DNA of 63,981 bases, filler included, from Octopus bimaculoides (lineage: Eukaryota), in the NCBI RefSeq assembly GCF_001194135.2. It is 8 parts of 8 records of this genome, joined end to end, with 100 filler letters (N's around TTAATTAATTAA, not from the genome) between each part and the next. Parts side by side here need not be neighbours in the genome. Positions count along the whole stretch, not along the records: positions 16,971 to 37,404 come from NC_068984.1; 7 more parts are not named here. The stretch is one strand, 5' to 3'. The notes below the pieces were generated by a model. It was not told the origin of the DNA, ran no database searches, and worked only from the letters and a program-made list of their open reading frames with translations. Below, piece after piece: positions 23,966 through 37,526 of this stretch (its first letter is position 1; the number at the start of each line of letters is the position of its first letter). A program made the translations under genes and the position numbers.

Positions 23966-24360
23966 TTTATCACCGAACCCACTATTGTAGAGTGCTTCGT
24001 TGTACGGTCTTTCGATTTTCTTGAATATAGATTCCTTTGATGGTAAATTGGTGAGTTTTTATATGTTCTTTCCAAAGTTTTTAACTAAACTTTAAGGATT
24101 GTTAAAAAAATCTATGTATATAGTGGATATTTTCATTTTTTAATGAATTTTGTACATGGAAGCTTCTAACTCTAAATTAACTGCTTTGGGATGTATGACA
24201 TCTTTAATAGAGAAAATCAAGTTTTGCAATAACTTTGTTCTACTCACAAGATGAACCTCCAAAATAAGGCTTGAAAATACAAAGAAATTTACAGTCTGAT
24301 AAAGACCACCAAGTTGAAACTTTGAAGTAACTGCTAACCTTATTCTTATAAAAATAAAAC
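23955..24360 (-). mobile_element. Degenerate Penelope-like RT fragment (same type as the 63 kb element)
   Basis: LGGLYQ...KNENIHYIH...SLVKNFGKNI*KLTNLPSKESIFKKIERPYNEALYNSGF parallels GGLYRDD...KSNENLKYIN...ALVNNLGKRIS...IFNKHAPYYNEVLHKAGY at 63.3-63.7 kb. Confidence 0.6.
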
Positions 24361-24527
24361 ATGATACTCTAGTGTAAGTTAATGTTATAACTTAATGTTA
24401 ACCTATGTTTGACTATTTTTATATATAACTATACAAATATCACACATATTGGCATATTGGTCGTTGAGCGTGAGCATGTTTATGAACGAAATCTACAAGA
24501 GTTTGCATTTTAACTTTTGTTTTTCAG

Positions 24528-24740
24528 GTTATGATTGCCGGAACTAACAGATTGATGAAAAAATTACAGATGAGGGATGAATACAAAGACAACGAAATTC
24601 CGTTTGAGGAGTATCTTGGTGTAATGAACCAAAATGTCTTAATTAAAGAAATGGAAGGAAGCAAATACAGAAATTCCGATTATTTGACCTTCCAAGAAAC
24701 GAATTGGTTTAAATTCGATGGAAGTCCTGAGCAAGATAAG
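24528..24740 (+). CDS. Internal coding exon of an uncharacterised protein (phase 0/0, 71 aa)
   Basis: Acceptor ttttgtttttcAG, donor AAG|GTAATA, 213 nt open: VMIAGTNRLMKKLQMRDEYKDNEIPFEEYLGVMNQNVLIKEMEGSKYRNSDYLTFQETNWFKFDGSPEQDK. Not repetitive. Confidence 0.8.
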
Positions 24741-25294
24741 GTAATATACTTGTATCGATTGGTTTACTTGTCACGTAGTTCAATTAAATTATGACCTTAT
24801 TACTAATTAATTTCAAAAGCTGTACGCAAATTATTGATCCTAGAATCTACTTATAACAGTTGAGGTAGATTCGATTTAGTTGATTTTAAATATTTTGCTT
24901 TTACCGATTCGTGTATTTCCTTTTACAGAGCCATTGCCAGAAAATAGTAAAATGCTCTAATGATTCTGGGACTTAGACCTTAAGACGCTTATCTAGTAGT
25001 AATAACAATGATGCAATCTTAAAGAAGGGACCTTTTCTCCAGAATAGTCATTGGGTTAGGAATTCAAAGAATAAGTTTGAATACATTTCTTCAGTCATTT
25101 ACTAAATTGGCTAGGTAGATGCTCTCTGATTAGGCAAAACCAAATAATGTTGCTGGAATATTTGGCAAGTCTCTTGTTTATACGAAGAAAATATATTTAA
25201 ATGTGGGTTACCATGCATAAAGATATGATTCAAAAATAACTTTCAATCAATTGAAATTATAATCGTAAGTAGAAAAGATGAAATTGTTTTCAAA

Positions 25295-25492
25295 TTTTAG
25301 CTCAAGACCAGCAATTTCGAGGTAGAGACTAAGTCGATTATATCGACTTCAGTGCTAAGCTGGTACTTATTTTATCGACCTCGAAAGGATGAAAAATAAA
25401 GTCGACTTCGGCGGAAGTTGAACTCAGAACGTACAGACGGATGAAATGCCGTTAAGCATTTTGCCCAGAGTGTTAACGGTTCTGCCAGCTCA
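25295..25492 (-). mobile_element. SINE family B (intronic)
   Basis: ggtacttattttatcgacctcgaaaggatgaaaaataaagtcgacttcggcggaagttgaactcagaacg. Confidence 0.85.
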
Positions 25493-26717
25493 TCGACCCC
25501 AGAAGGAATGCTAATAGCATTAATAAATGTTACTTTATATTAGTTGAAATAAATTTTCACAGATTCATTAGTAAATGCTTCCTGCTTAGATAAACTGTGA
25601 TAAATCTATTGTGGATAAACATATAACAATATACCTGAAGTGTAGAAAAAAATTATGCTTTATAATTTGTCTTAGGTATTTCTGATGTATCTTCTTTTGC
25701 TATTACTTACATTACTCAACACTTTACCCTTTTCTGAGGTGCTTAAGTAATGATTTCAGAAACTTCCCCGCCCCACTGTTTTCTGTTTACTGTTTTCTGC
25801 AAACTTATGAGTCCATCGAGTTATATATTTAATGATTTAAATATAATTTTAAAACAATCTTAATTATGGAATTATTTTGTTAGTCATTTTCTGACCAATT
25901 GTAAGTTTTCAAGCCTGAGTGTCTTTCACTTAACCGGCAAAGTTTATGAATATTTTCTCCACAATCGATTGTGTCTGCGTTCATCTTGGATTAATATCCT
26001 GTATTTTCCATTTACTTAGAATACATGAGCAATATGTCGCCATTTAAATCTTAGGATAGAACAGAAAGACCATCTGTGAATAAGATATGTTATCTCATTT
26101 GTTATGATTTTTCTAAGGCTTCATGGCACTGGATCGTATGTGAAGTTTACTGAAATGAACAAATCGCAAAAAGAGATGTGATTGATAATTAATTTGTCTG
26201 CTAAACCAGCATATATAAATATATTTAGATAGACGACTTGCAAATCACTAATTAATTGCTGCGACATTAATTTTATTGACATCTACTGCTTTGTTTAGGT
26301 AAGGAGAAAGTTATTCTCAAGGAAAATTATTTCAAGTGATATCTTGTAGGCGCCTAATTTAAGATCTCAAAGTCTGGAATAAGCATAACATTGAGAGGAG
26401 GGAAATAAAGGCTATTCGACACATCTAAGTTGCATGCCTAATAAAACCTTAATGAGTTACAGGAAGTAACACCGTTTTGAATCTAGTCGTCGCTGGACAA
26501 TTTCTTCATTGAAGAGGTCCAAATCTATTGCATACCATTTTCTAAGAAATGGGACTTAATTTGCAGTCAGTTAAAACGAGACAAATAAGTATCTTCTTGT
26601 ATCAGAATCAGAGACACTCTGAATTTTTTAATACAAATGTAAGGTAAATTGGCAGCGAATACATTAGTTAATCAAGCATTAGTTAATCTTATATCTAAAT
26701 GCAAGTAAAAGCAATAA

Positions 26718-26880
26718 TCTAGCAGAATCGTTAGAGCGTCAGACAAAATACTTTACAGTATTTCTTCTAGCACTTTATGTTTTGAGTTCTAATTCTGCCG
26801 AGGTCAACTTCGTCTTTCATCCTTTTGGAGTCTATAAGACAAAGTACCAGTCGATTTCTGGCCTTGTGCTTAAATTAGAA
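26718..26880 (+). mobile_element. SINE family B, degenerate (intronic)
   Basis: gcagaatcgttagagcg...gagttctaattctgccgaggtcaacttcgtctttcatccttttggagtc. Confidence 0.75.
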
Positions 26881-27318
26881 ATCCCATCTATTGTGAAGTT
26901 GTGATGAATAATCGGCTGAAAGTTATGAATAATTCATTGTGATAACGAATGTATATACTTGTTACAGTCCACTAGTTTTATACTTGTGCAGTTTAGGGTT
27001 ATAATACATAACCCCCCGAACATGGAATCGAACGGAAACAGATTACAATGCAGAATTGTGAAATCTGAAAATAGTTACAAAGAAGCAAGCATCCTTGTCC
27101 AGCATCCTCTTATCTTGATTATACTGTCTGTCGCATTGAATATCAAATTGAGATACTGAGCATTGAACTGATTCTTGCAAACAACTGGTACTTATTTCGT
27201 TAGTATATCCTTCGCTAAGTCGAAAAGTAAAATCTGCTCTGTTGGATATCTCAGCTGAAAGCTAGAAATGCTTTTTGTACTGTTTAATCCAGTGCTTTGA
27301 TTTTCTTTCAGATATTTA

Positions 27319-28582
27319 CAGGGGTTGGACAAAATAATGGAAACACTTAGCATCAAAGCATCATAATTTTGAAATATCTTTAAAAACTGTCAAAAGCTTC
27401 TTTATTTTTATGTTTTTTGATTTATTATTAGTGTTGCTTAATATGTTTTGCTAAAATTGCTGTTTTTTCTAGATATCACCAGAAAAAGGTAATTAAAATT
27501 CATTAAAATGACTGATCTATCGGACTTTCAAACATGTCAGATTCATGGTGCTCGTATGGCAGGCGCTAGCGCAACGAAAACAGCCGAAATGTTTGGTGTA
27601 TCAAGAAGTACTGTCTTGAAAGTTATGACAGCCTTTGAGAAAGAGGGAAAACCTCGTCGAAACAAAACTCCGGAAGAAAACCAAAACTTTCAGATAGGGA
27701 CCGTCCGACTCTTACGCAAATTATTAGAAAGGATCACAAAAGTACAGCTCCCAAAATTACTGCAGAGCTTAATGACCACCTCTAGAACCCAGTTTCCGCA
27801 AAAACCGTTCACCGGGAGCTGCACAAAGCCGGATTTCACGGGAGGGCCGCAAGCATAAAACCACTACTTTCAAAAACAAACGTTGCAAAGCGATTAGAAC
27901 GGAGTAAAAACCTACAGAATTGGTCCGTAGAGAAGTGGAAGAATGTTATTTTTTCAGACGAGTAATCCTTTACCTTATTTCCGACCACCGGCCGAGTATA
28001 CGTGTGGAGATAGCCAAAAGAGGCATTTGACCCAGACTGCCTTCTTCCAGCTGTTAAACATGGAAGAGGGTGATGAGCTGGGGGGCTATATATTGGAAAT
28101 CCGCCGGCCCAATGGTTTCCCTTCATGGCAGAATTAATAGTGAAGACTATTTAAGAATTTTATCTGATCAAATTCAACGTATGGTTGCAGAAATGTTTCC
28201 GAAGGGAAACGCAATCTTTCAGGAAGATAATGCACCAATTCACACATCTAAAGTTGTTACTGAATGGCACGAGGAACATTTTAGTGAAGCTGAACATCTT
28301 ATCTGGCCACCACAGTCTCCAGATGTCAATATCATTGAACATTTATGGTACATTTTAGAAAACAAGTAAGGAGTTGATATCCTCTACCATCATCACTACA
28401 AGAATTGGAGACTGTTTTAGCTGAAGAATGGACAAAACTTCCTTTGGAAACAATTCAAACTTTGTACGAGTCCATACCTTGTAGAATTCAAGCTATAATT
28501 ACTACCAAAGGCGGTATTACTCAATATTAAAATAAGGTTGTTTGAAATTTTAAGGTGTTTCCATTATTTTGTCCAACCCTTG
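27319..28582 (+). mobile_element. Full-length Tc1 element (DD34E), intronic
   Basis: TA at 27317-27318 and 28583-28584; TIRs CAGGGGTTGGACAAAATAATGGAAACAC / GTGTTTCCATTATTTTGTCCAACCCTTG (1 mismatch in 28); 1264 bp. Confidence 0.95.
27508..28530 (+). pseudogene. Tc1 transposase pseudogene
   Basis: MTDLSDFQ...GVSRSTV (HTH), VIFSDE, WGAI.W, IFQEDNAPIHT...WPPQSPDVNIIEHLW; frameshifts and premature stops; original stop at about 28528-28530. Confidence 0.93.
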
Positions 28583-28833
28583 TATATGAAAAAAGTTAAC
28601 ATCATCAAATGAAGTAAACTTTTGTTTTATTTTATATTTTAGTCAGAAGAGGAAAAATTTCACCTGTGAGAATTGAAATCGTACAGATTGATGTGATTTC
28701 TGTTCAAATCGAGCCTCTGCAGTTTAATCTACCGATTTTGTATCATTTCTGATTTATTTTTCCAGTCATTTATGGTTGGAAAAATCCTGTACATTTCTTA
28801 AATTTATTTCTTCTATGCAATATTATGTTCTAG

Positions 28834-29052
28834 ATTTATCAAGTAGAAGCATGGTTTGCCAATCTGATCAACGATATGGATGTTTTAACTGACACAGAAA
28901 TCAACATTATTGATTTCGCAAACATTGTTGCAGCTACTGGGGCTGCAGTAAAAGATTTTTTCTCAGTTTTTGTGGCTGCCGACAATATCGAGCGTAGTAT
29001 AGTAGACGTGGGTATTCTGCGATATCCGGACATAGAAAGACCCTTTTTCAAG
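28834..29052 (+). CDS. Next coding exon of the same uncharacterised protein (phase 0/0, 73 aa)
   Basis: Acceptor tattatgttctAG, donor AAG|GTATCT, 219 nt open: IYQVEAWFANLINDMDVLTDTEINIIDFANIVAATGAAVKDFFSVFVAADNIERSIVDVGILRYPDIERPFFK. Joins 24528-24740 in frame across a 4093-nt GT-AG intron. Confidence 0.8.
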
Positions 29053-29110
29053 GTATCTATTCTGTTTTTCTTTTATAACAACCAAACAAAAGGGTCAAAT
29101 TGTGTGATTA

Positions 29111-29300
29111 CAGGTAAGTTTACCGCCATCAATTCACCGCAGGGAAAGTTCACTGCCATCAATTCACCGCGAAGAAAGTTCACCGCGGGGAAAGTTTACC
29201 GAAAAAATATATCCATAGTATCTCGCCATTAATAGTTAAAAACTACTTTATTGAAAAAAAAAAGAACCTAAAACGGGAATTGATGACGGTGAACCTGCCG
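29111..29300. mobile_element. Small non-autonomous TIR-like element with 30-bp subterminal repeats
   Basis: AAGTT(T/C)AC(C/T)GCCATCAATTCACCGC repeated at 29116 and 29146 (partial at 29176 and 29191); inverted copy GAATTGATGACGGTGAACCT at 29277-29296. Confidence 0.55.
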
Positions 29301-29349
29301 GCCATGAAATTGTGTGTGTGTGTGTGTGTGTGTATGTGTGTGTGTTTGT

Positions 29350-29386
<37 letters not shown>

Positions 29387-30341
29387 TGTGTGCGTGTGGG
29401 TGCAGCTAGTGAATTTTCTTTCTATTTCTGTAGACAGTTGTATTTCAATCACAAGGCGGCTACCCACCTGCCCATATCAATTTCCATTCATTCCACAATC
29501 AAACTATTGTTTTAACTTATTCATTGGCGTGTTTGATAAATAGGTGAATGAAAGGGAAAAGAAAATGGTACATGTGTCTGCGGAATACTCAACCACATAC
29601 TCAATTCAAGAAGTCGACTGAAGGACTGAATGTCATTCTCAGAAACTACTGGAGAGTCTCATCTTTTATATATGTATATGTACGTGTGAGTGTGAGCATG
29701 CGAGTATGAGCCCGTAAGTATGTATGTGTGTGTGCATTTGTGCGTGCAAGTGTGTTCATGTGTGTGTAGAGGAAAGCTCACTTAATCTCGCTGAGTTATG
29801 TGAGTAGGTCGGATTCAACCAATCTGCGGAATATATGATATCAAGGTCAAGAATATTGAAAATTCAGATTGTTCCATCAAAGCTTCATGGAAACTAAAAT
29901 GGCTGTAGTTTAGACTACTTTCAGTTTAAATTACAGCACTTTTACNNNNNNNNNNNNNNNNNNNNNNNNNNNNNNNNNNNNNNNNNNNNNNNNNNNNNNN
30001 NNNNNNNNNNNNNNNNNNNNNNNNNNNNNNNNNNNNNNNNNNNNNNNNNNNNNNNNNNNNNNNNNNNNNNNNNNNNNNNNNNNNNNNNNNNNNNNNNNNN
30101 NNNNNNNNNNNNNNNNNNNNNNNNNNNNNNNNNNNNNNNNNNNNNNNNNNNNNNNNNNNNNNNNNNNNNNNNNNNNNNNNNNNNNNNNNNNNNNNNNNNN
30201 NNNNNNNNNNNNNNNNNNNNNNNNNNNNNNNNNNNNNNNNNNNNNNNNNNNNNNNNNNNNNNNNNNNNNNNNNNNNNNNNNNNNNNNNNNNNNNNNNNNN
30301 NNNNNNNNNNNNNNNNNNNNNNNNNNNNNNNNNNNNNNNNA

Positions 30342-30375
<34 letters not shown>

Positions 30376-30379
<4 letters not shown>

Positions 30380-30470
30380 GAATAAGTCCTGGAGTCGATT
30401 TACTCGACTAAAGGTGGTGCTCCAGCATGGCCACAGTCAGATGGCTGAAACAAGTAAAAGAGAGTAAAAG
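30376..30470 (+). mobile_element. SINE family A tail (head in gap)
   Basis: gaataagtcctggagtcgatttactcgactaaaggtggtgctccagcatggccacagtc. Confidence 0.85.
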
Positions 30471-31090
30471 AGAATATATATATAAGTTACTGACTGACCC
30501 TGTGTTGATTTATTTTATACCCCTTGGTTCAATTTTTCTCGAAATTTACTTTAGTTTCTAAGAAAACATCTTTCCAACTTTGGCAATGCTTTATGTAGAT
30601 GAGCTAACGAAAATTTATAGAGTAAAGACTTGGGAAGTTAAAACTTTAATATCTTTATAACAAGACTGACATTTATAATTCTTTGACAGTACATTTTCTA
30701 CGTTTCTCATGCCAAAACTTAAATTATGGATTAAATCTTCCTGCATTTAGACATCAGAACTTTGAATAATCTTCCACAAAATGCTGTTGGAATAAACGTT
30801 CACAATAACTGTCCAGACTAAATGGAATCTCAAAATGTCTTCTATAACTTGCTTCCGTCTGGCGATTAAAACGTACCCTGATGGGGTACGTTTTAATCGT
30901 CAGAGGGAACACATGGCTGGATTTTACCCTAGAGCTGTCATTATAAAGTGTACTGCTGTTCTGTTTCCCATCCTGCTTTTACTAAAAACATCCTGCATTT
31001 CTTTTATTCTATGTCGTTTCCGTTGCCTATCTTATGGCCTATTGCTTTATAAATATCTATAGATTATAATTGTTAATATGTTTTACATTT

Positions 31091-31307
31091 AAGGCGGTGA
31101 GCCGACAAAATCGTTAGCACGCCGGGTAAAATACTTAACGGCTTTTCGTCCGTTTTTACGTTTTGAGTTCAAATTTCCCGAAGGTCAACTTTACCTTTCC
31201 TCCTTTCGGGACCGATAAAATAAATTCCAGTTGAACACTAGAATCGATGTTGTCGACTTACCCCCTTACCCGAAGTTGCAAGCCTTGTGCCACAATTTGA
31301 AACCAAT
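31091..31307 (+). mobile_element. SINE family B
   Basis: aaggcggtgagccgacaaaatcgttagcacgccgg...gagttcaaatttcccgaaggtcaactttacctttcctcctttcggg. Confidence 0.85.
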
Positions 31308-32072
31308 AGTGTTACATTTGAAAACAAATCTAAAATGTTCAGGTCATATCTTAGAAAGTTTTGGATTCCTTTTCGTTAACCAAATTGCATACGAAGTCAT
31401 TTTTTCATTGCTACATTCATGAAGATGTAATTAGCAGAAAACATCTTTAATTTAAATTCATAACCAAGTCGCGAACGTATCTCTCTGAGTTTCGAACAAC
31501 TCTTGTAATATCCATTTTCTTGTATAAATGCCTTATCTATTTCCGGTGTCGGTTTAAAATATAACAGAGACAGACTGGAAATGAGTGAATCTGGTGATAT
31601 ATAGAAAACGTAGAATATTATATTAAACAAATACTATCAGAAAAATAAATTATTGGAAATACGCCTGAATTACGAAATCTATTAAAAGTTGATCTGAATA
31701 AAATAAAATAAGGAATGCAACTAGAAATGATGTTTGCTTTCGTAAATAATAAGATATCATACAATAAAGGCACATTAACAAAGAAATAACAATTACTAAG
31801 AGCTTTCAGACGAAGCAAATATATTTTTATTCTACTAAATTTTGTAGAAGTTACTTAAATGAATACAACAATTGGTAATATGAATAATATATATATATTT
31901 CTAGTCTTATATTTCGAGCATTTAACAACAATATACGCTTTCGATAAAACAGTTGCTCCCGCAAAGCAAATTAAATAAAATTTGGGATTTTGCGGAGGAT
32001 CAAAATAGGTAACATAAACAAGACAGTGAAAACATACAGGAAGGGCTGCTAAGCCTAAATGAGGTTGTGGTG

Positions 32073-32907
32073 GCGAACGCGTAAATCAAGCTAGGACAGG
32101 AGACAAACAAGAACACGCCTTCCTTGTTCCAGCTACAACGGAGAGAAAGGAAGAAAGATGACCGATGGTCACGTGAGCAAGGGAGGAGGAGTGAGGGAGA
32201 GAGAGTTACAGAGTAATAGGACAGAATAGTGGGAGAAGAGGAGATAAAAGAATAAGAGATAGAAAAAGAGAGAAAAATGAAAGAGTAAAACGATCGTATA
32301 GAGTGCGCATCAGAATTATTAAGATAAATTTTACTTGAAAGAGGATGCATGGCGTTCAATCATATAATAATATAAATAATATATATATGCATATATACAT
32401 GCGTATATGTACATACTTACATCTATACGTATATATATGCATATGTGGGCACAGGACATCACGAAACGTGTACAACAAAAAAGTACGAAGCACGAGTACA
32501 TGGAACATGAACTATTCTTTCGAACAACGAAAGACACAAATGGAAAACAAATAACATAAAGAACGACCCTTCATCAATTGTTGACTGTTTTTCTAGTCTC
32601 GTATTTCGAGCATACGCCACGCATCCTTTTCCAAGTAAGTTTTATCTTAATAATTCTGATTCGCACTCTATACAATCTTTTTACTCTTTCAGTTTTCTCT
32701 CTTTTTCTATCTCTTATTCTTTTACCTTCTCTTCTCCCACTATTCTATCCTATTACTCTGTCACTCTCTCTCCCTTACTCCTCCTCCCCTGATCATGTGG
32801 CTCCCACGTGACCATCGGCCATCTTTCTTCCTTTCTCTCCGTTGTAGCTGGAACAAGGAAGACGTGTTCTTGTTTGTCTCCTGTCCCAGCTTGATTTACG
32901 CGTTCGC
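32073..32907. repeat. Long inverted repeat (arms 32073-32355 and 32614-32907)
   Basis: The arms align over about 290 bp at roughly 90% by eye (gcgaacgcgtaaatcaagct.ggacaggagacaaacaagaacacg...aggatgc.tggcgt). Confidence 0.92.
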
Positions 32908-33297
32908 ACACACACACACAGAGGCACAATAACTCAAGCACCAGATACAGTCACACTCACAGATACACAATTATTTATGAAATGCGAACAAGACAAATAC
33001 ATAAAGAAAAGAGGCGAGAAGGAGAGCAGAGAGTACGAGAAAAGGAGAGAGCAGATTACAAAAAGCTGAAACACATATACGCAAGTACACACATACACAA
33101 ACACACACACACACAATTGTATAGAATCATTCACGAGAAGCCAGCCTTTAGAGATAAGTCTGAGATTTCGGTTTTCTGCTACATCCCTCCAATATCACAT
33201 ATGTTAACTGTAACATTAGAAACAGGAATAAACCCCCACACTCTCATTCTAATAAATAAGCAGTGGCTTTGCATCTATAACAAAAATAAATATTTTT

Positions 33298-33508
33298 TTC
33301 TACTCTAGGAACAAAGCCTAGAAATTTGGGGGGAAGAGGCCGGTCGATTAGATCGACTCCAGTAACAACTAGTACTTAATTTATCGACTCCGAAAGGATG
33401 AAAGGCAAAGTCGACCTCGGTGGCATTTGAACTCAGAACGTAAAGACAAACGAAATACTGCTAAACATTTCGTCCGGCGTGCTAACGATTCTGCCAGCTA
33501 GCCGCCTT
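33298..33508 (-). mobile_element. SINE family B, near full length
   Basis: Reverse complement of 58656-58872. Confidence 0.9.
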
Positions 33509-34679
33509 TATAATAATAAATATTTGAACTAAAATATTCAATCTTGAGTGAGACGACTGGATCTTAACGTAGTAAACTGAATAGGAGCGAGATGGAGAAC
33601 AGAGTGTTGGATCATAGATTGTAAGTTCATCCTTTTCTCTCTCTGCTAGCGAGGAGAAGAGTTAGTTGTGCCGTGATGTATTTTTCGAATTATCTTGGCA
33701 TGTTATCTATTGTGATAGATTATTATTCCGTCTGTAGATAGAATTAATTTGTTATCCCATCACGCTAACGAATCAATGCAATCATTATTTTCATAGTAAG
33801 ACCAACTTTAAATGTCAGTAAGACTAACTATAAATGTTTACATACATACAGACAGAATACATACATACACGTATAATAGTACATTTGAATTGAATTCTTA
33901 TATTGCGATTCCAGCTTCACGCCAATGCAATTTTTAGAAGGGAAATGTTAAAACTAGAAGTAGTGATTTATTAAGTTTATTTAATAAACTAAATCAATCA
34001 CGGCTGTTATTTGGGTATGTCTTGACTGGCTGCTTATTTTTGTGTCGAGTTTAATTTCGTCAATTATGTTTTAATCCTTCATTAAAAAAATTTTTTTTTT
34101 ACTTGCTTCGATCATCGGTCCGCGGCCATGCGGCCATGTTGGGCTGCTGCCCGTGAAAGATTTAGTCTAGCAGATCGTCCCTTGTACATATTTTTTGTTT
34201 TGCAATGGTACAAACATACACTGTATACATGCGCACTATATATTCACAGTCACATACACACATACACACGTATACATACCACCTGGACAAGCACATATCA
34301 ACTGCAGAACACAAGTGTTTGTTCACGCACACACACACACACGTTAGCCTCACACATATATACAGGTCCATACGCGCCCACGCACACACAAATACGCAAA
34401 ATGCACATCACTCCACACAGCACATACACTAGGTTACATGTACACATACGCACACACCAGGCCAATGCGCATGCACACACATGATAACCGCGCACATAGT
34501 ACACACATCCATATGCAGACACACATACAAGTAGATAACACACATAACGCATATTACTCCACATAATGTACGCACTGGGTCAATTACACACATACACACA
34601 GGCAGGTACACATATTTTTCAGCTTACCCACACATACATACACATGAGCACTATTCTCACATACTCACACGCGCACGAG

Positions 34680-34935
34680 ATTAGATTCGTTCCGCCGAGT
34701 CACTGTCATTATCTACCTTTCATTTAGCCTTCTCCTGGCTATTTGGTCATATTGAACCGTTAATCCCAACATTGTTTTCATTCTCTCTTCTCCGCTCTTA
34801 ATCCTTTCGACGAAGAGCGTAGGTTCGAAACGTAAACGACTTTGCCATTCTTTCCGAGTGTTAAACCAATACAGCTGCTTGTTGTTCCTACACCTGTCTT
34901 TTGTTTTCTGTAAATTTGAACAATATATTACATAC
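34680..34935 (+). mobile_element. Penelope-like pseudo-LTR with degenerate minimal hammerhead
   Basis: TCGACGA-A-GAGC-GTAG-GTTC-GAAAC-GTA at 34807-34834 within a pyrimidine-rich unit ending near TA-rich sequence. Confidence 0.55.
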
Positions 34936-35266
34936 GTTCTCCTGGTCACCTCAATTTGATCTTGCCTGACTGAACTTGCTACGCTCTTTGACTCTCATCC
35001 TAACTATTTCTCGAACTTTCGGTACATCTCCTCAGCTACATAACCAGCACTCCACCCGGATTACCACCGGATCTTCGTTCTCATTCGGATTCTACCTCCA
35101 TGGCTCTTACTGGCTATTCCTGTATATATATATATATATATATATAAATATATATNNNNNNNNNNNNNNNNNNNNNNNNNNNNNNNNNNNNNNNNNNNNN
35201 NNNNNNNNNNNNNNNNNNNNNNNNTATATATATCTATATCTATATCTATATCTATATATATGTATG

Positions 35267-35298
<32 letters not shown>

Positions 35299-35576
35299 TG
35301 TATGTATGTAGGCATGTATGTGTGTGTATGTATGTATATGTACGCGAAAGTGTGAGAATTTGACTGAGACTGTGAATTCCTGCATGCCTCTAGATTCATT
35401 CATGTGCATGTAGATCCATATACATGTATAGATATAAGTATACGTATATGTATACGTATACATATACGTGTGCACTTATGTTCGTGAACGTATCTTTGGT
35501 GCGTGCATTTGTTTATATATTTGCATGTTTGTGGAAGTTTATATGAATATATCCATATGCCCCTTTATATATATAT

Positions 35577-35874
35577 ATATAATTTAGAGAAAAAAACCGC
35601 AAGTATTGAAGTCATCTATGAAAATCCGCAGTTACATATAGAAAAATTTAGTAAGTAAATACACTAAAAAAACCTATAATAAAAATACAAAGTTATAAAT
35701 ATTAAAATAATATTATTTTATTATTTTACTATTTTATTATTTTATTTTTTTAATATTTATTACTTTGTATATTTATTATAGGTCTTTTTAATGTATTTAC
35801 TTAGATTTTTCTATATGTGACCGTGGATTTTCATGGGTGAATTCAATAATTGTGTTTTTTTCTCTAAATTATAT
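35577..35874. repeat. AT-rich foldback palindrome (arms about 35577-35707 and 35746-35874)
   Basis: ataatttagagaaaaaaac...catatagaaaaat...cctataataaa.atacaaagt pairs with its reverse complement; (AT)n on both outer sides. Confidence 0.9.
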
Positions 35875-35971
35875 ATTTATATATTTATATATTTATATAT
35901 TGTGAAATTTAATTTAATTTTAATTTTGATAAATTAAATTAAATTGATTTTTAACCCTAATATTATTATCA

Positions 35972-36004
<33 letters not shown>

Positions 36005-36297
36005 NNNNNNNNNNNNNNNNNNNNNNNNNNNNNNNNNNNNNNNNNNNNNNNNNNNNNNNNNNNNNNNNNNNNNNNNNNNNNNNNNNNNNNNNNNNNNNNN
36101 NNNNNNNNNNNNNNNNNNNNNNNNNNNNNNNNNNNNNNNNNNNNNNNNNNNNNNNNNNNNNNNNNNNNNNNNNNNNNNNNNNNNNNNNNNNNNNNNNNNN
36201 NNNNNNNNNNNNNNNNNNNNNNNNNNNNNNNNNNNNNNNNNNNNNNNNNNNNNNNNNNNNNNNNNNNNNNNNNNNNNNNNNNNNNNNNNNNNNNNNN

Positions 36298-37210
36298 GGT
36301 GTATCAAGAAGTACTGTTTCGAAAGTAATGACAGCCTTTGAGAAAGAGGGAAAAACCTCGTTGAAACAAAACTTCGGAAGAAAACCAAAACTTTCAGATA
36401 GGAACCGTCGGACTCTTATGCGAATTGTAGAAAGGATCACAAAAGTACAGCTCCCAAAATTACTGCAGAACTTAATGACCACCTCGAGAACCCAGTTTCC
36501 GCAAAAACTGTTCGCCGAGAGCTGCACAAAGCCGGATTTCACGGGAGGGGTGCAATCAGAAAACCACTACTTTCAAAAACAAACGTTGCAAAGCCTTTAG
36601 AGTGGAGTAAAAACCTACAGAATTGGTCCGTAGAGAAGTGGAAGAATGTTATTTTCTCAGACGAGTAATCCTTTACCTTATTTCTGACCACCGCCGAGTA
36701 TACGTGTGGAGACAGCCAAAAGAAGCATTTGACCCAGGCTCTATATTGGAAATCCGCCGGCCCAATGGTTTCCCTTCAAGGCAGAATTAATAGTGAAGAC
36801 TATTTTAGCATTTTATCTGATCAAATTCATCGTATGGTTGCGGAAATGTTTCCGGAGGGAAACACAATCTTTCAGGATGATAATTCACCGATTCACACAG
36901 CAGAAGTTGCTACTGAATGGCACGAGGAACATTTTAGTGAAGTTGAACATTTTATCTGGCCACCGCAGTCCCCAGATTTCAATATTATCAAAATTTGATA
37001 GTGCATTCTAGATAAACTGGTAAGGAGTCGATATCCTCCACCGTCATCACTACAAGAACTGGAGAGTGTTTTAGCTGAAGAATGGACAAAACTTCCTTTG
37101 GAAACAATTCAAACTTTGTACGAGTCCATACCTTGTAGAATTCAAGCTGTAAGTACTGCCAAAGGCGGTCGTACCCATATTAAAATGCTTGTTTGAAATT
37201 TTAAGGTGTT
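36298..37210 (+). mobile_element. Second copy of the 27.3 kb Tc1 family (5' end in gap, about 50-bp internal deletion, clipped right TIR)
   Basis: Near-identical to 27594-28560; QDDNSPIHT...SPDFNIIK; lacks the CLLPAVKH...WGA segment. Confidence 0.93.
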
Positions 37211-37526
37211 ATATATACATATATGCATGTGCATATATATATATATACTCAAATACCCAAAATATCAAGGAGTTTCTGCCTCACCAACAGGAATTACACC
37301 ACAGTTATTTTGTGATCTTTGCTACCTTGGTTTCTATTAACCCATTTATTCTATCAGAATTATTATTTATTAGGATAGAATAAATACATATAATTAAATA
37401 TATANNNNNNNNNNNNNNNNNNNNNNNNNNNNNNNNNNNNNNNNNNNNTTAATTAATTAANNNNNNNNNNNNNNNNNNNNNNNNNNNNNNNNNNNNNNNN
37501 NNNNCACCACCACCACCACCACCACC

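Follow-up and report, generated by a model that had tools for sequence, protein, structure and literature searches.

Among described proteins, those to which the product of the gene considered here is best compared are the Cyt toxins (δ-endotoxins) of Bacillus thuringiensis (Cyt1Aa, 3RON/6T14; Cyt2Aa, 1CBY; Cyt2Ba, 2RCI), volvatoxin A2 and the Erwinia virulence factor Evf. The gene is LOC106877887 of Octopus bimaculoides, two exons of which lie in the stretch of DNA analysed (hereafter the window; 63,981 nucleotides (nt) including filler, from eight parts of the RefSeq assembly GCF_001194135.2). In the Dickeya cytolysin CytC, the secondary-structure elements follow the order α-α-β-α-α-β-β-β, wherein a four-strand sheet lies between two helical layers and strands β2-β3-β4 are linked back to β1; a lipid-binding pocket has been proposed for the whole Cyt/Evf group, and the cytolysins are patchily spread over bacteria and a mushroom (PMC5390079). 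Cyt-group proteins bind membranes, are cytolytic or haemolytic and are activated from protoxins by proteolysis. A further system that invites comparison is the centipede venom family 'unchar05', a case of fungus-to-arthropod transfer (Undheim & Jenner 2021, PMC7864903), given that there too a secreted protein of an animal, itself uncharacterised, has its closest kin among fungi.

The present analysis places LOC106877887 in a large, undescribed protein family that extends from cyanobacteria to octopods and that possibly has a cytolysin-like fold. As modelled, the family resembles the Cyt toxins, volvatoxin A2 and Evf in a single α/β domain of similar size and in the order of elements, and it is likewise patchily distributed; it differs from the Cyt group in that its predicted strands are longer, in an additional helix at the C-terminus and in a conserved network of charged residues. 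Identity with unchar05 was rejected: that study had included the O. bimaculoides genome in its searches, yet the 28 supplementary files contain neither the strings LRYPD, LRFPD, YRIKL and FKFDGS nor any Octopus entry (PMC7864903).

Two central exons of LOC106877887

The piece of the window taken from NC_068984.1 (positions 16971-37404) carries two internal coding exons of 213 and 219 nt, encoding 71 and 73 amino acids (aa), both in phase 0 (Table 1), and these are the central coding exons of O. bimaculoides LOC106877887. An earlier note, made from the DNA alone, had read them as a spliced gene with a 144-aa join; this reading was confirmed, coordinates included, and the join is identical at 144 of 144 positions to residues 122-265 of XP_014782525.1 (and of XP_014782450.1), so that the exon junction agrees with an independent RefSeq gene model. 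When a profile hidden Markov model (HMM) of the family was compared with the six-frame translation of the piece, only these two stretches matched (exon 2, E = 3.4e-32; exon 1, E = 1.6e-17), scores that are far beyond chance, and the model spans both exons unbroken.

Of the core, which extends over about 230 residues from β0 to the C-terminal helix, the piece encodes only residues 122-265, the rest being supplied by the RefSeq model. No exon for residues 1-121 was found in the readable part of 16971-24527, whether by tblastn with XP_014782525.1, an orthologue and N-terminal regions or by the family HMM, and no terminal exon (residues 266-326/327) was found in the readable part of 29053-37404 by tblastn with five terminal-exon peptides and both isoform ends or by the same HMM. 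Given that LOC106877887 spans 164 kb in assembly GCA_001194135.2, the remaining exons most likely lie outside the 20-kb piece. The assembly gaps at 23563-23922 and 29946-30340 are possible hiding places for exons but are not needed to explain the missing ones; the searches speak neither for nor against the second of these gaps, one of the places in which the earlier note proposed to look for the next exon, but it is probably the wrong place. Beside this locus, a related gene was observed on a 410-kb ENA contig, probably from another cephalopod (L001, 3710-12100), which displays the exon layout that is not readable in the octopus piece: an exon ending in ...DEKLK, exons matching the two in the window, and a terminal exon 1.7 kb further on.

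Three isoforms of the gene are annotated, each as "uncharacterized protein" (XP_014782450.1, XP_014782525.1 and XP_014782596.1); XP_014782525.1 is isoform X2 with 326 aa, XP_014782450.1 has 327 aa, and UniProt A0A0L8IHA9 corresponds to isoform X1. The record carries no function, domain or literature, and no paper was found under the gene, protein or UniProt identifiers; likewise, no expression, proteomic or activity data for the gene were found in the literature, and octopus skin-mucus proteome supplements held no match for it. Because the gene is already present in RefSeq and UniProt, the locus itself is not new; the novelty lies in its assignment to a large undescribed family. In its essentials, the interpretation given in the earlier note is right.

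The octopus protein begins with MKNQRILITFLGMLYFITVTS, a typical hydrophobic signal peptide as read by eye (modelled as a helix at residues 4-20), and the octopod family members as a whole display a signal sequence at their start on the same kind of reading; the product is thus predicted to be secreted. An acidic, disordered stretch of about 70 residues (22-90), with predicted local distance difference test (pLDDT) scores below 50 in the AlphaFold model, follows and could serve as a pro-region, and the remainder of the protein, from about residue 92 onwards, is the conserved α/β core. The only difference between isoforms X1 and X2 lies in the final 61-62 residues, for which there are two terminal exons, related to each other but distinct; the same alternative pair is found in the O. 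sinensis orthologue LOC115210937 and encodes the last helix together with two long strands. In isoform X3, the acidic region is shorter by 16 residues, and across both species the third isoform drops 8-16. The O. sinensis orthologue and that of O. vulgaris (CAI9721287.1) are about 75% identical to the O. bimaculoides protein over their full length and resemble it in the signal peptide, in the alternative terminal-exon pair and, by implication, in the exon borders, although their acidic N-terminal region is shorter.

A large and patchily distributed family

The family of LOC106877887-like proteins, which is unnamed and is defined here by two profiles (A1 and A3), was surveyed by searching a four-sequence profile against 1.84 billion representative proteins, with matches counted as clusters at 50% identity. 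The search returned 505 clusters at E <= 1e-3, of which 115 were retained at E <= 1e-30, and most members measure 250-330 aa, longer than the roughly 240 aa given in the earlier note. Shared motifs are LAPS-F/Y-G, FKFDGSPD, WF.NLI.D.DVL, IVA.TGA and D-I/V-G-V/I-LR-Y/F-PD...PYFK.YRI.L.AW. The exons in the window belong to the family both by their significant profile match and by the four motifs that fall within residues 122-265, and the strings listed in the note (N.FKFDGSP, WF..LI.D.DVL and D.G.LR.PD...P.FK) proved to be conserved family motifs in an alignment of 129 members. No model of Pfam, NCBIfam or PADLOC matches the family core (Pfam tested to E <= 10), and no PDB sequence matches the family profile at E <= 10, in keeping with the earlier description of a family with no assigned function. 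The family likewise yields no transposon domain.

The distribution of the family is very patchy, as had been claimed: members come from octopods, from fungi (Agaricomycetes and some ascomycetes), from filamentous cyanobacteria and from one amoebozoan and one green alga. The only named animals are octopods, each with several loci (O. sinensis, O. vulgaris, O. bimaculoides and Argonauta hians); cnidarians, suggested in the note, were absent from the named matches and from the approximately 30 clusters whose source was looked up, most clusters being unnamed metagenome or read-archive assemblies. Fungi, as the note had stated, are a main home of the family: the named Agaricomycetes are Leucocoprinus, Pilatotrama, Gymnopilus, Phlebia, Auricularia, Phanerochaete, Candolleomyces and Schizopora, and an ascomycete member occurs in Exophiala. 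The green algal member (Acetabularia) has a long N-terminal extension, the amoebozoan member (Mastigamoeba) carries a C-terminal ricin-B lectin (Pfam E = 7e-6), and a metagenomic member is fused to low-density lipoprotein (LDL) receptor class A repeats. For a record labelled 'Quercus', contamination is a possible origin.

When prokaryotes were scanned with one genome for each species, matches came from two cyanobacteria, both filamentous: Microcoleus sp. BROC3 and an Okeania metagenome-assembled genome, whose 284-aa proteins are 40% and 37% identical, respectively, to the octopus protein over residues 65-325; with the mushroom proteins included, identity to the octopus protein ranges from 36 to 40%. 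In both cyanobacteria (L003, 50-8197; L004, 273-6551), the family gene lies near a pair encoding a sigma-70 factor of the extracytoplasmic function type and a tetratricopeptide repeat protein. The Okeania neighbourhood also includes an α/β hydrolase and, after the family gene, a class-3 lipase, and that of Microcoleus an ATP-binding cassette exporter and a 403-aa protein without known function.

In a rough neighbour-joining tree, most octopod sequences form one clade, within which at least four paralogue lineages can be told apart, including one in common with Argonauta; one O. sinensis locus falls outside this clade, and the cyanobacterial proteins form a group of their own. With its star-like shape, the tree gives no clear direction of transfer. 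Multi-copy expansions are seen in both octopods and mushrooms, and a metagenome contig (L002; 72 kb, 33% GC) bears a tandem triplet, the three paralogues of which (8461-9000 on the minus strand; ~9627-10651 and ~11497-12400 on the plus strand) each appear to have one short intron and are closest to the Mastigamoeba member. As a separate observation, the O. bimaculoides paralogue XP_014790449.1 (LOC106883823) opens with 70 residues that resemble a reverse-transcriptase fragment, after which come the final two-thirds of the family core; it is probably a mis-joined gene model.

Predicted structure and its possible likeness to cytolysins

An AlphaFold2 model of the octopus protein, built from the 129-sequence alignment, has a mean pLDDT of 81.5, with most of the core above 90. 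The core contains helix A (118-135) and helix B (147-156), followed by strand β1 (168-181) and by helices C and D (190-225); next come three long strands (239-255, 264-280 and 283-301) and finally a C-terminal helix (303-324). According to the model, exon 1 supplies the greater part of helix A as well as helix B, strand β1 and the FKFDGSP loop, and exon 2 supplies helices C and D with the TGA loop, then strand β2 and the beginning of the invariant LR-Y/F-PD turn into β3. A model of the Phlebia (mushroom) protein (pLDDT 84.6) has shorter strands and an identical order of elements, such that αA-αB-β1-αC-αD-β2-β3-β4 is predicted for both. In strands β2 and β3, both faces bear hydrophobic residues, in keeping with a sheet that has helix cover on both sides.

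Across the 129 members, the most conserved positions include a set of charged residues (D117, 92%; D206, 87%; D208, 70%; D250, 83%; R255, 95%; D258, 76%; R268, 79%; R279, 75%), together with P257 (100%) and W199 (91%). The conserved Asp and Arg residues could serve as a latch that joins the sheet to the helices, or else as a ligand site or an active site.

Comparison of the octopus model with the PDB by Foldseek placed Cyt1Aa, Cyt2Aa, Cyt2Ba and Evf at the top, with a probability of up to 0.98 and E = 1e-4. A toxin-like fold, for which the earlier note had proposed a test, is thus suggested by the octopus model but not by the mushroom one, and several results weigh against it. The superpositions on Cyt and Evf are poor (template-modelling (TM) score 0.2-0.3; root-mean-square deviation 11-15 Å); the Phlebia model gave no PDB match better than E = 0.15; alignment of the family profile with a Cyt1Aa/Cyt2Aa/Cyt2Ba/CytC profile by hhalign yielded a probability of 0.1%; the core matched no Pfam model, the Cyt family included, even at E <= 10; and the conservation of charged residues looks more like a ligand or active site than like a typical pore former. 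By the search of PDB sequences and the Pfam and hhalign nulls, the family does not qualify at the sequence level as a member of the Cyt group (Pfam Bac_thur_toxin, which covers Cyt and volvatoxin A2). That the core nonetheless adopts a cytolysin-like fold may be put at about even odds, and, given the Phlebia and hhalign nulls, the fold is treated as a lead and not as a result. The helix-grip fold of START and Bet v 1 proteins was tried as another candidate and rejected, the PYL, START and PR-10 matches having Foldseek probabilities <= 0.25 and TM scores <= 0.25.

Two viral proteins in the BFVD also strongly resemble the octopus model: M1I283 (367 aa) at E = 1.5e-21, TMq 0.63 and 24% identity, and M1HBT0 (371 aa) at E = 2.9e-10 and TMq 0.47. 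Both, whose accession series may be that of chloroviruses, are probably true family members, the match being one of structure only; two scans of IMG/VR with different sub-alignments returned no viral relatives.

Proposed function and its alternatives

The reading that we tentatively favour, although it falls somewhat short of an even chance, is that the family comprises secreted effectors of a defence or toxin type that target lipids or membranes and act in the manner of the Cyt, volvatoxin and Evf proteins; for the toxin or defence idea of the earlier note there is thus some indirect support. It draws on the signal sequence, the patchy set of taxa, the lectin and LDL-receptor class A modules (as targeting modules), the Foldseek matches to Cyt proteins and the order of elements, the class-3 lipase beside the Okeania gene, and the copy-number expansions. 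Under this proposal, a core of cytolysin-like layout (α-α-β-α-α-β-β-β-α) would belong to a secreted effector that binds lipid or membrane; by a mechanism borrowed from the Cyt toxins, the helical layers would leave the sheet and the three long C-terminal strands would engage the bilayer. The alternative terminal exons would then vary two of these strands and the last helix, and the protein would have been spread between lineages by horizontal transfer as a defence or toxin gene and expanded in octopods. A bolder extension, unlikely as a whole, is that the family represents a new branch of the cytolysin fold, unrecognisable by sequence, that was passed on by horizontal transfer between filamentous cyanobacteria, fungi and protists as well as large algal viruses and an octopod ancestor, and that octopods built from it a secreted multigene arsenal (venom, mucus or immune) whose target range is varied by terminal-exon swaps.

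The strongest rival, doubtful though not to be neglected, is a non-lytic binder or carrier of lipids or other hydrophobic ligands, in which the ligand would sit between sheet and helices as it does in Evf (palmitate) and in START and Bet v 1 proteins. Evf is among the best matches of the octopus model, helix-grip proteins (START, PYL and Bet v 1) occupy the lower Foldseek ranks, the pocket proposed for the Cyt/Evf group would provide a precedent (PMC5390079), and conserved buried polar residues would suit a specific ligand site; nevertheless, the START and PYL matches have probabilities <= 0.25 and TM scores of only ~0.1-0.2, and the lectin and LDL-receptor class A fusions, the patchiness and the lineage expansions suit effectors more than carriers.

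The unusual conservation of charged residues from cyanobacteria to octopus (D117, D206, D250, R255 and R268, with P257 invariant), coupled with the 36-40% identity that is kept across kingdoms, could alternatively point to an enzyme of an undescribed class, with the invariant Asp, Arg and Pro residues as an active site for, e.g., a lipid, glycan or nucleotide substrate. This is rather improbable, as no enzyme family was matched by sequence (Pfam and NCBIfam) or by structure (Foldseek, both models) and no conserved Ser, His or Cys nucleophile emerged from the 129-member conservation analysis.

That the two exons are merely a look-alike, i.e., a pseudogene fragment or transposon-derived sequence, might be suspected from their being the only two in the piece, from the transposon remains that fill the intron and flanks, and from the reverse-transcriptase-like stretch fused to the paralogue model XP_014790449.1, but it is extremely improbable given that both frames are intact, the splice sites are canonical, the exons agree at every residue with a full-length RefSeq model for which three isoforms are annotated, orthologues in O. 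sinensis and O. vulgaris retain about 75% identity from end to end, the family HMM covers the exons without breaks, and the family is free of transposon domains.

Should the effector reading with its cytolysin-like fold be true, the small Cyt/volvatoxin/Evf group would be widened to hundreds of proteins from cyanobacteria, mushrooms, protists and cephalopods, and octopods would gain both an unrecognised class of secreted effector and a clear case of inter-kingdom gene transfer. Even if it is wrong, a conserved family of 505 clusters has been without a name, a domain model or a structure, and, with the confident structure prediction that now exists, it lends itself readily to assays of expression, lipid binding and lysis.

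Other features of the piece

Features of the NC_068984.1 piece are collected in Table 1. Apart from the exons, the piece is marked by transposon remains, including two decayed Tc1/mariner-type copies, one of them within the intron between the exons.

Table 1. Features of positions 16971-37404 of the window; a slash within sequence marks an exon edge.
Feature	Position	Strand	Details
Internal coding exon 1, VMIAGTNRL...DGSPEQDK	24528-24740	+	Edges TTTTTCAG / GTTATG ... GATAAG / GTAATA; AG acceptor 24526-24527, GT donor 24741-24742; residues 122-192 of LOC106877887
Internal coding exon 2, IYQVEAWFANLI...YPDIERPFFK	28834-29052	+	Edges TGTTCTAG / ATTTAT ... TTCAAG / GTATCT; AG acceptor 28832-28833, GT donor 29053-29054; residues 193-265 of LOC106877887
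Intron between the exons	24741-28833	+	4093 nt; GT...AG splice sites; holds the first Tc1/mariner copy
Upstream intron sequence, as far as the piece shows	16971-24527	+	N gaps 20279-20833, 23563-23922
Downstream intron sequence, as far as the piece shows	29053-37404	+	N gaps 29946-30340, 35156-35224, 36005-36297
Decayed Tc1/mariner-type copy, helix-turn-helix (HTH) and DDE_3	~27508-28523		In the intron between the exons; Pfam matches on open reading frames (ORFs) 27508-27858 and 28070-28369
Second decayed Tc1/mariner-type copy	~36298-37177		89-94% identical to the intron copy (copy matched at 36349-37177); frames broken in both
Run of three ORFs	17736-19284	+	148, 163 and 102 aa in shifting frames; Cys-rich start (CVNHSDNFCYVCGKF); no Pfam match
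Foldback	32066-32355 / 32614-32914		Inverted arms of ~110 and 186 nt, 91-95% complementarity; spacer ~260 nt
Short interspersed repeat, three copies	25360-25490, 33369-33499, 31075-31233		75-81% identical; one copy inverted

The run of three ORFs looks like a decayed gene, perhaps one derived from a transposon, and the foldback resembles a miniature inverted-repeat transposable element or a foldback element. Scans of the whole piece for Rfam families and tRNAs found nothing, and the copies of the short interspersed repeat contain no tRNA (ARAGORN) and no known RNA (Rfam). Apparent long 'inverted repeats' between the gap regions were rejected as matches between runs of N and (TA)n. Lastly, the five assembly gaps are mostly flanked by (TA)n or (TG)n microsatellites.

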